Assembly (NCBI RefSeq): GCF_006345805.1
Contig: NC_043009.1
Location: 24,118,001 to 24,182,000 of the forward strand
DNA: 64,000 nucleotides
Origin: Octopus sinensis
Lineage: Eukaryota
Reading direction: 5' to 3'
Positions 4,612 to 11,865 of this stretch are shown piece after piece (positions within the stretch are counted from its first letter, which is position 1; each line of letters opens with the position of its first letter). The position numbers and the translations under genes were made by a program. The notes beneath the pieces were generated by a model that was not told the origin of the DNA, did no database searches, and worked only from the letters and a program-made list of their open reading frames with translations.

Positions 4612-4884
4612 AAGGCTCAGGCACCATGACGTTCGAATACTCCCATCATTATCTACATCTGACGCTTACAGTCTCGGTAGTAAGATCCAGCCAAGAAATC
4701 AAATCATGTTTCAAAATAAACTATAGTGTTGGATTCCGCCGTTATTCAAATAATCTTGGTTGCAACAAAAAGCGCTGGCACTCCAATGAAAATCGCCCTG
4801 TGAAAAACTTGAGTCCAAATATTAAAAGTCTTTCAGAGTTAGAAGGATTTGATTTTGGCCAAATTTACAGAAACGGATACCTCG
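4612..4884 (+). CDS. Gene A, C-terminal exon of domain 1 plus linker (KGSGTMTFEY...LTVSV...SCFKINY...NLGCNKKR...GYL); read-through instead reaches a stop at 4934
   Basis: Acceptor gtgttttacag; homologous to exons at 18165 and 39402 (LTVSV, CF.[IL].Y, LGC). Internal phase-1 donor CTCG|gtaagg at 4885; in-frame TAG ends 4934, with AATAAA at 4963, 4967 and 4975. Confidence 0.8.
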
Positions 4885-7539
4885 GTAAGGAAAATGAGAA
4901 AGAAAATTCTCTCATTTGGCACAAAAATGTTTAGAAGCAAAGATTTTTAAAATGAATGTATGAATAAATAAATGAATAAATTTAAGTGAAATTTTCATAT
5001 GGTTATAATCGGTGGGAAAAATACGAAGAAATATAAATGAAACCCATTGATAGAAAATAATGCATAAAATCTTTTTAATGATTAGATTATATAAATATAA
5101 GAACTGTTTTCTGCTCAATAAATATGCGATTAAATTTCTTTAAGTTGTATACGTTTGGCTTTCATTTCATTAACACATTTATTTTTGTGCCAATTTGCAA
5201 ATGTAGAATTATGGAAATATCCCAGCAAATATAATGTAAAACACTAACATTGTTCCTACTTTTTATTATATGAGTGGATTAAGCTGGTATCAGTATGTTT
5301 AAATCACAACTGACAGTTAAATATACAACGGAATATCAAAATTAAAGAACTATTTATAATAATTCGAGGCTCGTCCACGGTTTTTCATAAGGGATATATT
5401 TTCAGTTTAATGGTTGGTTCCAAGAACTGCAAGCACCTCTATCTCATTTGTCATTGGTTATCATAGATCTTTTAATTTGGTTTCAAATTTTGGCACAAGG
5501 CCAGCAATGATGGGGGTGGGGAAGTGAGTCAGTCAATTATGTCGACACCCATGTTCAACTGGTACTTATTTTATCTACCCCGAAAGGTTGAGAGGCAAAG
5601 TCGACCTCGCCGAATCTTGAACTCCGAACGTAAGGTCGGACGAAATGCCACTTAGCATTTTGCCACCCGTATTAACGATTTAACCAGCTAACGATTCAAC
5701 CATAGACCATCTTATTTACATATCGAAAATTATCGGACAAGCTGCTTAGAGGCATTTCTTCCGTTCTTACATTCTGAGTTCAAATTCCGCTGTAGTTGAC
5801 TTAACTTTTCATTCTTTTGTAGGTTTATAAAATAAGTGTCAGTTGGGCACTGGGCGCCTCCAAATAATTTTCAGGACTTTTGTTTATCTATCTGTTTTTT
5901 TTTCTTGTTTTACTTTCCTTACACCGGTTGCCCAGTTCCCATGGCATATTACGACATCCCTCTTGAACGGGTCACCAGTCAGTTGTAGATTTCAAGGCCG
6001 ACAATTTTGAGGGGAGCTGCAAAGACTGATTACGTCGACACCGGCACATGATTGATATGATAACGACTCCGAAGGGATAAAAAGGTAAGGTTGACCACGG
6101 CTGGATTCGAACTCGGAGCGTAGAGAGCCAGAAAAAATGTCACTAAGCATTTTTTACGACGTATCAGCGACTGTGTCAGCGTACCGTCTTAATCATCCAT
6201 CTACAAACTGAATACATTAAATATGCTGCATATACGTATAGTCGTATAAACGGAATACGACATGTATCCTGTTAATCGGACCACACGTTCATGAGATACG
6301 ATGCTTTTTCGGGTACCTTTATAAACAGCCAAACCGCGCATAATGGAAAAGCACTTTGGAAGTAAAGGTACCATTGAAATGTGAATACAAACGGAATAAA
6401 ACAAGTTTCGCGTAAATAGGACCACGAGTTCCCGAAATATGCCGTTTTTTCGTGTACCTTCAACCTCACAGGTCACAAGTAGTTTAGTCTAGTCTAGTCT
6501 AGTAAATATATATATATATATACATATATATATATGATTTTAACCATGATTTTTGATGAACTTAAATAATTACAAATTTATTTTACTACCTATTTTGAAG
6601 ACTTTCATGTAAACTGTTTAAACAAAAAGCCCCACAACATTTTCTTATCATTGTGAAAGACTCCATTTTTAACATTTTCTTATCATTATCAAAGACTGTA
6701 TAACTGTATTTTAATACAATTGCTATAACCATTTTTTAACACAACAAAGCTTTACATATTAATTTTGATAATTTATTTTTTTTTTAAATGAAACCGGTCA
6801 AGTCAAGAAACACCTCTAAAAGACCTCTGCTTTTTCAAACCCTCTTTCATATATACATATATATATATATATATATATATATATATATATATATATATAT
6901 ATTATATATATATATATATATATATATATATGTATATATATATATATATAATATATATATATATATACATATACATATATATATATATTATATATATATA
7001 TATGTGTGTGTGTGTGTGTGTGTGTGTGTTCGTGTGTGTGTTTTTGTGTTTGCGTGTGTTTGTAGGTAGGTAGATAAGTATGTACATATAGACAAAGGGA
7101 TTACTCCCAGTTTTCGCTAACAATGTTCACTCCCTAGGTATTGGTCAGTCCGAGGCTATAGTAGAAGTTACTAACTCAAGGTGCCGAGCTGTGAGATTGA
7201 ATCTAAAACCACGTTGTTGCAATGCGTACTTCTTAACCACAGAGCTAGGCCTGCGCCTGTAACAGAAGCCTTTCCTAAAATACAGAATCACATTTCATTA
7301 GACTGAATGGAATCTCTAGAAATATCAAGTAATACCCAAAAATATAGGAATTCTGAAAATTTCAGGTAATTTCAAACCAAATATAAAACACAATTCTCCT
7401 ACAACAAAAGCAAGAAAATGTGAAGTCTAATGCACAACAAAGTCCTCCGAAAGGAATCACTAGATTGTTGGACGGGTTCACAATTGTACTGAATGGCTTT
7501 ATTTCGAACTCTACAACGTATTCATTATATTTTTCGTTT

Positions 7540-7800
7540 GTTCTTTCTCGAGCCATGCCTGGCTCATAAGGGCCGGTTTTCCGGTTTCCTTGGCGTATAG
7601 GTTCCCCACCTGGACGGGACGCCAGTCCGTCGCAGGGGAGCCGCATGATGCAGGAGGAAAGAGTGAGAGAAAATTGTGGCGAAAGAGTCAGCAGAAGTTC
7701 GCCATTACTTTCTGCAGGAGCCGGTGGGACTTTGGTGTTTCGCTCATAAACACACATATCGCCCGGTCTGAGATTCGAACCCACTGTGTGACACCTCGTA
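7540..7800 (-). mobile_element. Second tRNA-SINE family; related copy at 12310-12590, isolated head at 26860-26945
   Basis: Shared ggacgggacgccagtcc body; A-box (TGGCCCAGTGG) and B-box (GGTTTCGATTCC) visible in the 12510-12590 head. Confidence 0.65.
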
Positions 7801-9465: not shown

Positions 9466-11673
9466 ACTTTGTTTTGCCCACAAATTTCTTTGTAATCGTA
9501 ATCTGCACTGTTTCAAATATATTAGTAGCACATTTCATTAAAAACACACCTATTTTCCAGAAAGTTATGAGGGGGAAAATATCAGGCCCTGTAAATTTTC
9601 CGAAACTCCTTTCCCGCACGCCTCGAAAATTAATTTTCCATGCCATCTTACAAACACTTAATCGAGAGGATATAAGTGATTATATGGTGGAAGTTTCGTT
9701 AAAATTATCCATTTGTCTGGAAGTTATGAGGCAACAAAGTCGGTGGGGTATTAAATTGTTGTTATGCCTTTTTTCAATGAAAGTTAACGTTAACGGATTA
9801 ACTTTCGTTACATTTTCAAAGAATTAACGGATTATTTGATTAACGATTAACGAAGTCAACATGTTGATTAACTGTGACCACCTGTGTATATATCTATATG
9901 TATATATGTATATATGTATATATATATATATATATATATATATTATATATATATATATATATATAATATATATATATATATATATATATATATATATATG
10001 TATGTATGTATGTATGTATGTATTTGTGAGTTTGTGCTTGTAGCCCCATCATCTCTTGACAACCAATGTGGGGGTGTTGACTTCTCATTAACTTAGCGGT
10101 TCGGCAAGAAAAAAAAATTAGATAAGTACTAGGTTTACAAATATTAAGTCCTGGGGTTGAATTGTTCGACTAAAGGCGGTGCTCGAGCATGGCCGCAGTC
10201 AAATACCTGAAACAAATAAAAGAATAAAAAATAAAAGAATACATGTATATCGATATATATAAACATATAGGGAGAATTCACCCCCCCCCCCAAAAAAAAA
10301 ACAACAACAAAAGACGAAGACAGGTGGTGTAGACAACAAACAGATGTATTAGTATAGCGCTCGGGAAGTGAAAAGTCTTTAACATTTCGAGCTTACGCTT
10401 TTCTACAGAAAGGAAGACAGAAAGAAACAAGTAGAGAAAATAAAGAATGTGTAGTGGCTAGCGATCTATCATGGCGAATGCCAGACAGAAGGGTCAGACA
10501 GGAGAGCTAGGGAGGAGGGGAGATAATACAGTAGTGGTGATCCCAAAAAGAAGCTGCGCGTGCATGTGTGTAAGAGAGTTTGTATGTGCATGTGGAAGAG
10601 GGGTGATTATCTTCACATGCGCGCGTGTGTGTATGTGTAGGTGTGAAAATGTGGATCTAAGAATTGGTCAGTACTGGTGTGTGTGTGTGTGTGGTGTGTT
10701 GTAATACATACATACATACACACACACACACACACACATACATACGCAGATGTATGAGTGCATGTATCTATCTATCTAATCTCTCTCTCTCTCTCTCTCT
10801 CTCTATATATATATATATATATATATATATACACACATGGGTTTACATGTAAAGCATGCGCTCATAACGCCCCTGCGATCTTAACCAATACAGAAAGAAA
10901 ACACACTAACGAAACCAGTTATGTATGCGTACACCTGCACAAGTTATACACATTGCACCACTACACATACATAATTTCCACAAAAACACCAACCTGAAAG
11001 ACGCACACATTTTCCACAAACACTTCAAGTTCGCTCTTACCAACTTGCAGCATAGCCAAACCGGTAGCGATATAAACACAGCTATATCATTCTGTACACT
11101 ACCACATGAAGCTCACGGCTAACTCTAACCGCACACGCGGCCATGCGCTGCCATCTGTCGGCGCAGTACAGAACTAGCCCAGGATGTGCTTGATACCTCC
11201 TCGCATATATATACATATACACATACATACATACATACATACATACATACATACATACATATATATATTTACATATATATATATATATATATATATACAT
11301 ATATATATATATCTGTAAATATAATAAGTGGCAATTATTCGGTAGCCATGATAATTGTCACATATATTTACAGATAACTTCCTCTATTTACACAATATCG
11401 AGGTTTCTTTCATTCTTTTGTTGTCTTACCATTACTATCAATATATATATATATATATATATATATATATATATATATATATGCGACGGGCTTCCAAATC
11501 TACTCACGAGTGTTTGGTCAGTCTGAAGTTATTGAAGTTATATTAGAAGATATTTTCCCAAAGTGCTGGTTGGGAAGCAATACCATTTGTGTATCGCATT
11601 ATACACGATAGCCATGTCATGATGAGTCGGCATACTTATCTAAATAATTTCTTTAACTTCATTATATTTACAG

Positions 11674-11865
11674 ATGTAATTGCTGATGGAAGATCTCTTT
11701 CAGAAGAAATGGTAAAAGAGAATAATGTGGTGAATATGGATTCTCAAAATGAACAATCGGTCACTAAAGGATCGGAAATTGGAGATTTGCAAATGAAAAT
11801 TCTTAAGTGTAATTGGAAAAAAAAAGCAGGACATTGTTCCATATTATTAGACAATCTTCCATGGT
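11674..11865 (+). CDS. Gene A, acidic spacer and N-terminus of domain 2 (DVIADG...GDLQMKILKCNWKKKAGHCSILLDNLPW)
   Basis: Acceptor atttacag, donor TGGT|gtaagt; 192 nt, phase 1-1; aligns with gene B exon 29908-30108 (IAD, M[VI]K, GD[LI]Q, CxWK...G.C). Confidence 0.85.

Follow-up and report, generated by a model that had tools for sequence, protein, structure and literature searches.

Does a gene in a tandem array end where its single-domain paralogs end, or does it run on by splicing into the domain of its neighbour? This question is raised by LOC115218660 of Octopus sinensis, which lies in a stretch of 64,000 nucleotides (nt) that we refer to as the window (CM016871.1:24118001-24182000, + strand; positions below count from its first base). 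The window covers part of a tandem array of cephalopod genes whose products are small, secreted, cysteine-containing and all-beta, and LOC115218660 (protein P0025) is listed in RefSeq as an 'uncharacterized protein' of 419 amino acids (aa). An initial annotation, made from the sequence alone, had proposed that the exon at 4612 either stops in place, giving a one-domain product, or is spliced to a second domain exon at 11674, and that dibasic cleavage could release separate domains as in toxin or antimicrobial polyproteins. We consider it probable that LOC115218660 unites two old paralogous units of the tandem array, A and B, in one fused gene, and that exon 4612 is a composite exon offering a choice between splicing and polyadenylation (poly(A)).

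A standard member of this family has four exons (signal, first domain, mid and terminal), with every intron in phase 1. Three paralogous units, A, B and C, all lie on the + strand of the window. Unit A is represented by its last two exons, its signal and first domain exons being upstream of base 1 (in O. vulgaris they lie at L004:10001-10096 and L004:20308-20493). These two are a mid exon at 2460-2543 (84 nt, phase 1-1; residues ~96-123 of LOC115218660, found by tblastn of P0025) and the last domain exon at 4612-4884 (273 nt, phase 1-1; to 4934 if unspliced), which encodes the C-terminal half of domain 1 and an acidic tail. Unit B consists of a first domain exon at 11674-11865 (192 nt, phase 1-1), which carries an acidic region and the C-x-W-x6-C motif, a mid exon at 14369-14452 (84 nt, phase 1-1), and a terminal exon at 18165-18508, whose TGA stop at 18506-18508 closes the annotated 419-aa coding sequence. 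As a comparison unit, we used gene C (LOC115218663, 25201-39574), a single-domain paralog with exons at 25201-25294 (signal), 29908-30108 (first domain), 35310-35393 (mid) and 39402-39574 (terminal). The terminal exons of A, B (18165) and C (39402) are paralogous to one another, as are the first domain exons of B (11674-11865) and C (29908-30108).

The splice sites joining A to B, called by the initial annotation as a strong phase-1 donor at 4885 and an in-frame phase-1 acceptor at 11674, can be read directly in the sequence. Exon 4612 starts directly after ttttacag and ends at 4884 with the donor CTCG/GTAAGG, where the slash marks the splice; the GTAAGG at 4885-4890 is in phase 1 and lies inside the ancestral terminal exon. 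The acceptor tatatttacag/AT, also in phase 1, opens the exon at 11674, and the join reads in frame as ...RNGYL-D-VIADGRSL.... The intron of the two-domain mRNA would span 4885-11673 (6.8 kb), formerly the intergenic space between A and B. Donor and acceptor are identical in O. sinensis, O. vulgaris and O. bimaculoides. Where gene A has TAC CTC GGT AAG GAA AAT, the single-domain paralog LOC115218395 reads TAC ATT GAT GAA GAA AAC, and by this comparison the donor is judged to be derived, through two substitutions in the unit A tail (GAT GAA to GGT AAG). Counted over the + strand of the window, the string GTAAG is present 40 times (0.00063 per nt), and at this rate a phase-1 copy in the 156-nt tail is expected ~0.03 times by chance.

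Spliced together, the five window exons (2460-2543, 4612-4884, 11674-11865, 14369-14452 and 18165-18508) reproduce residues 96-419 of XP_029644447.1 by exact match; therefore, the two-domain reading is correct and already in RefSeq. Public proteins of the family were recovered by an exhaustive profile search, cluster look-ups and a family-profile search. In O. sinensis, the junction ...GYL/DVIAD... is carried by both XP_029644447.1 (isoform X1, 419 aa) and XP_036364122.1 (isoform X2, 346 aa, with a different 5′ end), and in O. vulgaris by CAI9731754.1 (419 aa). The O. bimaculoides models XP_014775008.2 (344 aa), XP_014775008.1 (325 aa) and UniProt A0A0L8H6E8 (228 aa) read ...DGYL/DVIADRR... 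at this place. The annotated gene upstream of gene C has its end at window position 18508, and its product is 419 aa long in O. sinensis as well as in O. vulgaris. These models of three species, together with the lack of a first exon in unit B, bear out the claimed two-domain product. The 344-aa O. bimaculoides model ends by read-through because sequence is missing at a run of Ns (L003:7089-9910); loss of the unit B terminal exon in that species was considered and rejected, its expected place being this same run. A literature search by locus and accession names found no papers. Since this model was in public databases beforehand, the two-domain reading does not in itself bring a new object. 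New are the finding that unit B is without a signal exon in three species and has kept its frame since an ancient duplication, the origin of the donor, and the predicted short isoform.

We next consider what exon 4612 would encode if left unspliced. The frame then runs GKENEKENSLIWHKNV and ends at TAG 4932-4934, and the read-through tail at 4885-4934, (G)KENEKENSLIWHKNV followed by this TAG, is homologous to a C-terminal motif of the family. Downstream on the same strand, three overlapping or adjacent AATAAA signals at 4963, 4967 and 4975 (4963-4980) lie 29-46 nt past the stop in A/T-rich low-complexity sequence, so that the claimed stop at 4934 with three AATAAA within 50 nt is indeed present; in O. 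bimaculoides, the first AATAAA cluster lies in an expanded (AAAT)n-type repeat. The unit A tail, ENEKENSLIWHKNV plus stop, aligns codon by codon with ENQSENPLVWKMNA plus stop of the single-domain LOC115218395, with TAG at the same position, and the motif recurs at the ends of P0007 (NQNENSLKWDHDA) and of Argonauta P0011 (...NNLVWNTYN), each followed by a stop. Unit A and LOC115218395 are near saturation at synonymous sites (pS 0.60), and even so the tail is the better-conserved part (33/51 nt). Beyond the stop, a conserved 95-nt block at 5079-5173 (+), with an AATAAA at 5117, aligns with the 3′ untranslated region (3′UTR) of LOC115218395 (score 48; the highest score among 300 shuffles was 42, z = 6.2), at a distance of 144 nt from the stop in A vs 159 nt in the paralog. 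This block is likely the ancestral poly(A) region. A resemblance ~190 nt past the stop of another paralog, LOC115218502 (...GCAATAAATAT...ATTAATTT), was judged by eye only.

Exon 4612 accordingly has the layout of a composite exon, with the donor at 4885, an in-frame TAG and AATAAA signals at 4963, 4967, 4975 and 5117, and it looks composite internal/terminal because its tail, stop and 3′UTR match the normal end of a single-domain paralog. This pattern of tail and 3′UTR would be expected if the terminal-exon mode had stayed in use long after the duplication. Composite internal/terminal exons are familiar from the secreted/membrane switch of immunoglobulin mu and from calcitonin/calcitonin gene-related peptide, in both of which the two isoforms are documented. 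The likeness lies in a single exon with an internal 5′ splice site followed by a stop and poly(A) signals, so that the products of the two choices would differ in their C-terminal parts. In LOC115218660, however, only the spliced form is annotated, in gene models, and what alternates is neither a membrane anchor nor a different peptide but an entire domain unit of a paralog.

Unit B has no signal exon of its own in the preceding interval, as the initial annotation had stated for 4935-11673. Scanned for the combination of start codon (ATG), hydrophobic core and phase-1 donor, this interval yielded nothing but translated microsatellites, (TG)n and (TA)n, and the same scan did recover the true signal exon of gene C at 25201-25294. 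We also trained a hidden Markov model (HMM) on 11 signal exons of the family. Within the A-B interval of all three Octopus species (part of the O. bimaculoides interval being a run of Ns), nothing scored above 7 bits, whereas all true signal exons in these species scored 56-64 bits. No recognisable relic of a signal exon was found in 4885-11673. Both the open reading frame (ORF)-type scan and the HMM thus agree with the initial annotation on this point.

In spite of this lack, the coding frame of unit B has been kept. Between unit B and gene C, synonymous sites are saturated (pS 0.72) and the terminal exon has an omega of 0.18, yet unit B has retained an open frame of 620 nt, its splice sites and the landmarks C-x-W...C, CF and LGC. 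From a frame left intact despite synonymous saturation it follows that unit B was translated during most of its past. In the comparison of O. sinensis with O. bimaculoides, the omega of the first domain exon is 0.98 in unit B and 1.36 in gene C, that of the mid exon is 0.29 and 0.37, respectively, and the sole indel in unit B is one of 24 nt, in frame. By these measures, unit B evolves between the two species like the bona fide gene C.

Unit A shows a different kind of change. The exon at 4612-4884 differs from its O. bimaculoides counterpart (L003 592-861) at 41/273 positions (15%), vs 9.6% in flanking non-coding sequence (P = 0.003). The changes are mostly non-synonymous, with an omega of 1.26, which suggests diversifying selection on domain 1. 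An exon that evolves faster than non-coding sequence with this omega fits an expressed gene, not a dead one. Viewed block by block, its identity between the two species is 85%, below every flanking non-coding block (88-94%). In O. vulgaris, unit A has a G-to-R change in LGC (counterpart of 4758), at a G that is invariant in the single-domain family alignment, and a W-to-R change at the TGG codon corresponding to 4917-4919, within the conserved tail motif. Together these two changes may reflect relaxed constraint, polymorphism or error.

To place the product, we compared it with known families and folds. P0025 starts MMKLISGGIIYLALVFHLGTGA..., all single-domain paralogs have a conserved signal exon, and, judged by sequence, the product of LOC115218660 would be secreted via an N-terminal signal peptide. 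Neither P0025 nor P0017 had a Pfam match, and P0005 reached 15.2 bits, below the gathering score of 27 for DUF4773 (PF15998); the cuttlefish proteins P0016 and P0023 passed this cut-off with 33.3 and 32.4 bits, in matches that span almost all of the model. Pfam searches with raw exon peptides gave chance matches only. An octopus-only profile, made of gene C orthologs and the A and B exons of the window and searched against 1.84 billion proteins, found P0016 (E = 1.2e-4), P0014 (8e-6) and P0013 (1.3e-6). The family profile retrieved the 419-aa P0022 at 8e-97; P0016, which is one of the sequences in that profile, came up at 1e-57. A word-indexed protein search was not exhaustive, as exact B exons missed P0022 and P0025, which contain them, and its negative result was discarded. 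On this profile evidence, the LOC115218660 family is judged to be distantly related to DUF4773 through a transitive link. One O. bimaculoides paralog carries the UniRef name 'DUF4773 domain-containing protein', and family members were found in Octopus, Argonauta hians and Acanthosepion pharaonis. Like the DUF4773 proteins, which are secreted proteins of invertebrates, the family has a signal peptide and an all-beta domain of ~110 residues with conserved Cys positions; unlike them, LOC115218660 has two domains in tandem, and its own protein is without a Pfam match.

Structure prediction gave a consistent picture of the domain. With the family alignment, AlphaFold2 modelled gene C as a signal peptide, then a low-confidence helical or acidic region, then a nine-strand up-and-down beta domain with a predicted local distance difference test score (pLDDT) of 80-89. 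The 419-aa protein was modelled with two nine-strand beta-meander domains, at pLDDT 77-88 for domain 1 and ~50-59 for domain 2, and with a linker at residues 185-253 that is predicted to be disordered (pLDDT ~30). Foldseek searches of both models against the PDB returned no significant match; the best had E = 0.039 and template modelling (TM) scores <= 0.34, weak resemblances to YwiB and avidins, which are small up-and-down barrels. Neuraminidase and propeller matches of the 419-aa model were set aside as meaningless (TM ~0.1). DUF4773 proteins have been listed in octopus skin mucus (PMC11431876), as well as in oyster haemocyte clusters and secreting locust pleuropodia. The most likely role, judged from these features, would be that of a rapidly changing binding protein outside the cell, for instance one acting in mucus or in immunity.

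Taken together, these results point to the following course of events. Two substitutions in the terminal-exon tail of unit A created the 5′ splice site at 4885, and in the public gene models this new donor joins unit A in frame to the first domain exon of unit B at 11674. The product would have one signal peptide and two beta domains, with ~75 residues of disordered, acidic linker between them. Exon 4612 would remain composite, keeping the ancestral frame, the stop at 4932-4934 and the 3′UTR/poly(A) block with its AATAAA at 5117. Where the donor is used, a two-domain mRNA would result; where cleavage and polyadenylation win, the gene would give an ancestral-type single-domain protein of ~229 aa. 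Tentatively, and at somewhat less than an even chance, we further suggest that the signal-less unit B survives only through the new donor of A, and that A makes one- and two-domain proteins from one promoter.

A related arrangement is known from conjoined genes, in which the penultimate coding part of an upstream gene is spliced to exon 2 of a downstream neighbour on the same strand, so that the stop and poly(A) site of the former and the first exon of the latter are bypassed. Units A and B show this arrangement of a tandem-paralog fusion at the level of gene models, not of transcripts. Unlike conjoined genes, however, unit B is without a first exon or signal peptide of its own in the three species, and a new donor lies inside the terminal exon of A; the fusion would be the only route of unit B to secretion, because it has no first exon in any of the three. 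Elsewhere in the array, LOC115218502 lies ~115 kb upstream (L005, O. sinensis CM016871.1:23973274-24002937; genes at 10001-19664 and 10001->29664 of that stretch). One of its annotated products (246 aa) has a range that reaches >10 kb beyond the terminal exon of LOC115218502 itself and takes in the start of the following paralog (26116), which may point to a second inter-paralog splice in the family. A search of its terminal-exon tail for a donor found none, and therefore its long isoform must be built differently.

Several observations weigh against the fusion with a composite exon or speak for an alternative in which the annotated gene is a chimera. Under this alternative, A would be a single-domain gene that ends at TAG 4934 with poly(A) near 5140, B would be an untranslated relic without promoter or signal, and gene predictors would have joined the two because their phases happen to fit. 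The junction is supported by gene models only, from pipelines that are not independent of one another and between which proteins are reused. Moreover, merged models of tandem paralogs occur in the same family, namely P0020 and P0027. The former (O. vulgaris, 342 aa) joins O. sinensis LOC115227066 and LOC115227065, and the latter (Acanthosepion pharaonis, 481 aa) has a complete internal signal peptide. Since pipelines sometimes merge tandem members of the LOC115218660 family in this way, every fusion needs transcript proof. The tail, stop and 3′UTR of A are ancestral and intact, and the first domain exon of B has an omega of about 1 between species. Domain 2 has lost one Cys of the CC pair and is modelled at low confidence. 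At a non-coding rate of 6.7 frameshifting indels/kb, the probability of finding no frameshift in B is 0.16, so that constraint since the species split is only suggestive, and the comparison of O. sinensis with O. vulgaris (0.41% vs 0.47% mismatches) is uninformative on constraint.

The same tension surrounds the short isoform. It is not annotated, and exact look-ups in the protein collection found none; this absence is weak evidence, because such a look-up needs full-length identity. Among the three species, the tail has undergone four non-synonymous and no synonymous changes, including the W-to-R change in O. vulgaris, and it may be drifting. Of the optional one-domain form proposed by the initial annotation, the sequence side stands as plausible, given a tail, stop and 3′UTR homologous to those of LOC115218395, and the isoform itself appears neither in annotation nor in the protein collection. 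Judged on these grounds, the predicted single-domain isoform of gene A has roughly even chances of existing, and it is checkable with existing Iso-Seq and 3′-end data.

Against the chimera, unit B has kept its 620-nt open frame, its splice sites and its key cysteines while its synonymous sites became saturated, and the omega of its mid exon (0.29) is like that of gene C. The donor is a derived, good consensus in the right phase, with a chance of only ~0.03, and is conserved in three species. In addition, both Gnomon isoforms of LOC115218660 use the junction, and extra Gnomon isoforms normally need transcript evidence. LOC115218660 also has no internal signal peptide, unlike the obvious merged models. 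On balance, we regard a chimeric annotation as unlikely, and prefer the fusion of A and B.

Another alternative, compatible with this fusion, holds that a proprotein convertase cleaves the two-domain precursor at KKR, and possibly at other sites too, to release mature domains. The KKR that the initial annotation had seen directly after domain 1 is present (codons 4767-4775, +, right after LGC, as LGCNKKR). In O. sinensis and O. vulgaris it comes directly behind the final Cys of domain 1. Disorder is predicted for the linker, and cleavage at KKR would leave domain 2 with an acidic N-terminal region, as in the single-domain paralogs. In O. bimaculoides, however, the same place reads SNKG. Across the family, the residues after LGC follow the pattern x-x-K-[KHR]-F, and these basic residues close the last predicted beta-strand in the AlphaFold2 models. 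The KKR is therefore read as a domain-end motif, because K-[KHR]-F is family-wide and several members end there (LGCFSKKF and IGCTKKQY, each followed by a stop). No dibasic site occurs between the linker and domain 2 of the two-domain protein, and conserved dibasic or furin-type sites flanking each unit were not found.

The comparison with dibasic-processed precursors, such as neuropeptide, antimicrobial and toxin arrays, leads in the same direction. LOC115218660 resembles them in having one signal peptide, more than one similar unit and, in two species, a KKR after unit 1. It differs in having two folded domains of ~100 residues that are ~35% identical rather than an array of repeated peptides, an unconserved site after the first and none before the second. 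No toxin or antimicrobial family match was obtained, with Pfam giving DUF4773 only and Foldseek against the PDB nothing significant, and LOC115218660 has no sequence or fold link to such families. Neither the release of separate domains nor the analogy with toxin or antimicrobial polyproteins found support, and we regard cleavage at KKR as quite unlikely. Finally, it is highly improbable that unit B forms a gene by itself, opened by a non-homologous first exon somewhere in 4935-11673, so that the A-B junction would not be the main route to its expression. In favour of this, the interval is 6.8 kb long, its O. bimaculoides counterpart is partly a run of Ns, and a microsatellite-derived hydrophobic ORF with a weak phase-1 donor lies at 7002-7065. 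Against it, none of the three species has an annotated gene that begins in the interval, no family-like signal exon is present, and the sole candidates are translation artefacts of (TG)n and (TA)n.

Further features of the window concern gene C and its surroundings. The O. sinensis locus of LOC115218663 matches window positions 15201-49574 at 100% over 34,374 bases, which fixes the place of the window in that genome. A three-exon model of gene C is 100% identical to an O. vulgaris protein, and O. sinensis LOC115218663 has one exon more; the mid exon is skipped in the O. vulgaris model (155 aa) and included in the O. sinensis and O. bimaculoides models (183 aa). This mid exon (35310-35393) adjoins one copy of a ~0.7 kb repeat that occurs in several copies, 84-95% alike and in both orientations, in the introns of B and C (15400-16136, 33090-33780 and 34400-35260). 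The peptide VADIEP appears twice in gene C, at the end of the signal exon (25263-25280) and in the first domain exon (29985-30002), which could be chance or a small internal duplication. Two inverted copies of a mariner-like element of ~1.3 kb, ~98% alike, bracket the gene at 23220-24518 (+) and 42335-43628 (-), and the transposase reading frames of both are broken. Within intron 1 of gene C, a 197-aa ORF at 28586-29179 (+) shares its end with an annotated 187-aa gene (~28616-29179) that has DUF4817 and faint HTH_32 matches and is probably transposase-derived. At 55548-57137 (-), a 529-aa ORF is reverse-transcriptase-like, of the long interspersed nuclear element type.

These results assign LOC115218660, so far listed as 'uncharacterised', to a cephalopod expansion of DUF4773, an unstudied family with members reported from octopus skin mucus and from mollusc immune cells. 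They also point to how the two-domain form may have arisen, namely through the capture of a paralog without a signal exon by a derived donor within what had been a terminal exon. If unit B does survive only through this donor, and A makes both forms, LOC115218660 would represent an intermediate stage of domain accretion by exon capture, in a rapidly evolving and possibly mucosal or immune cephalopod family, with the ratio of the one- and two-domain forms set by competition between splicing and polyadenylation.

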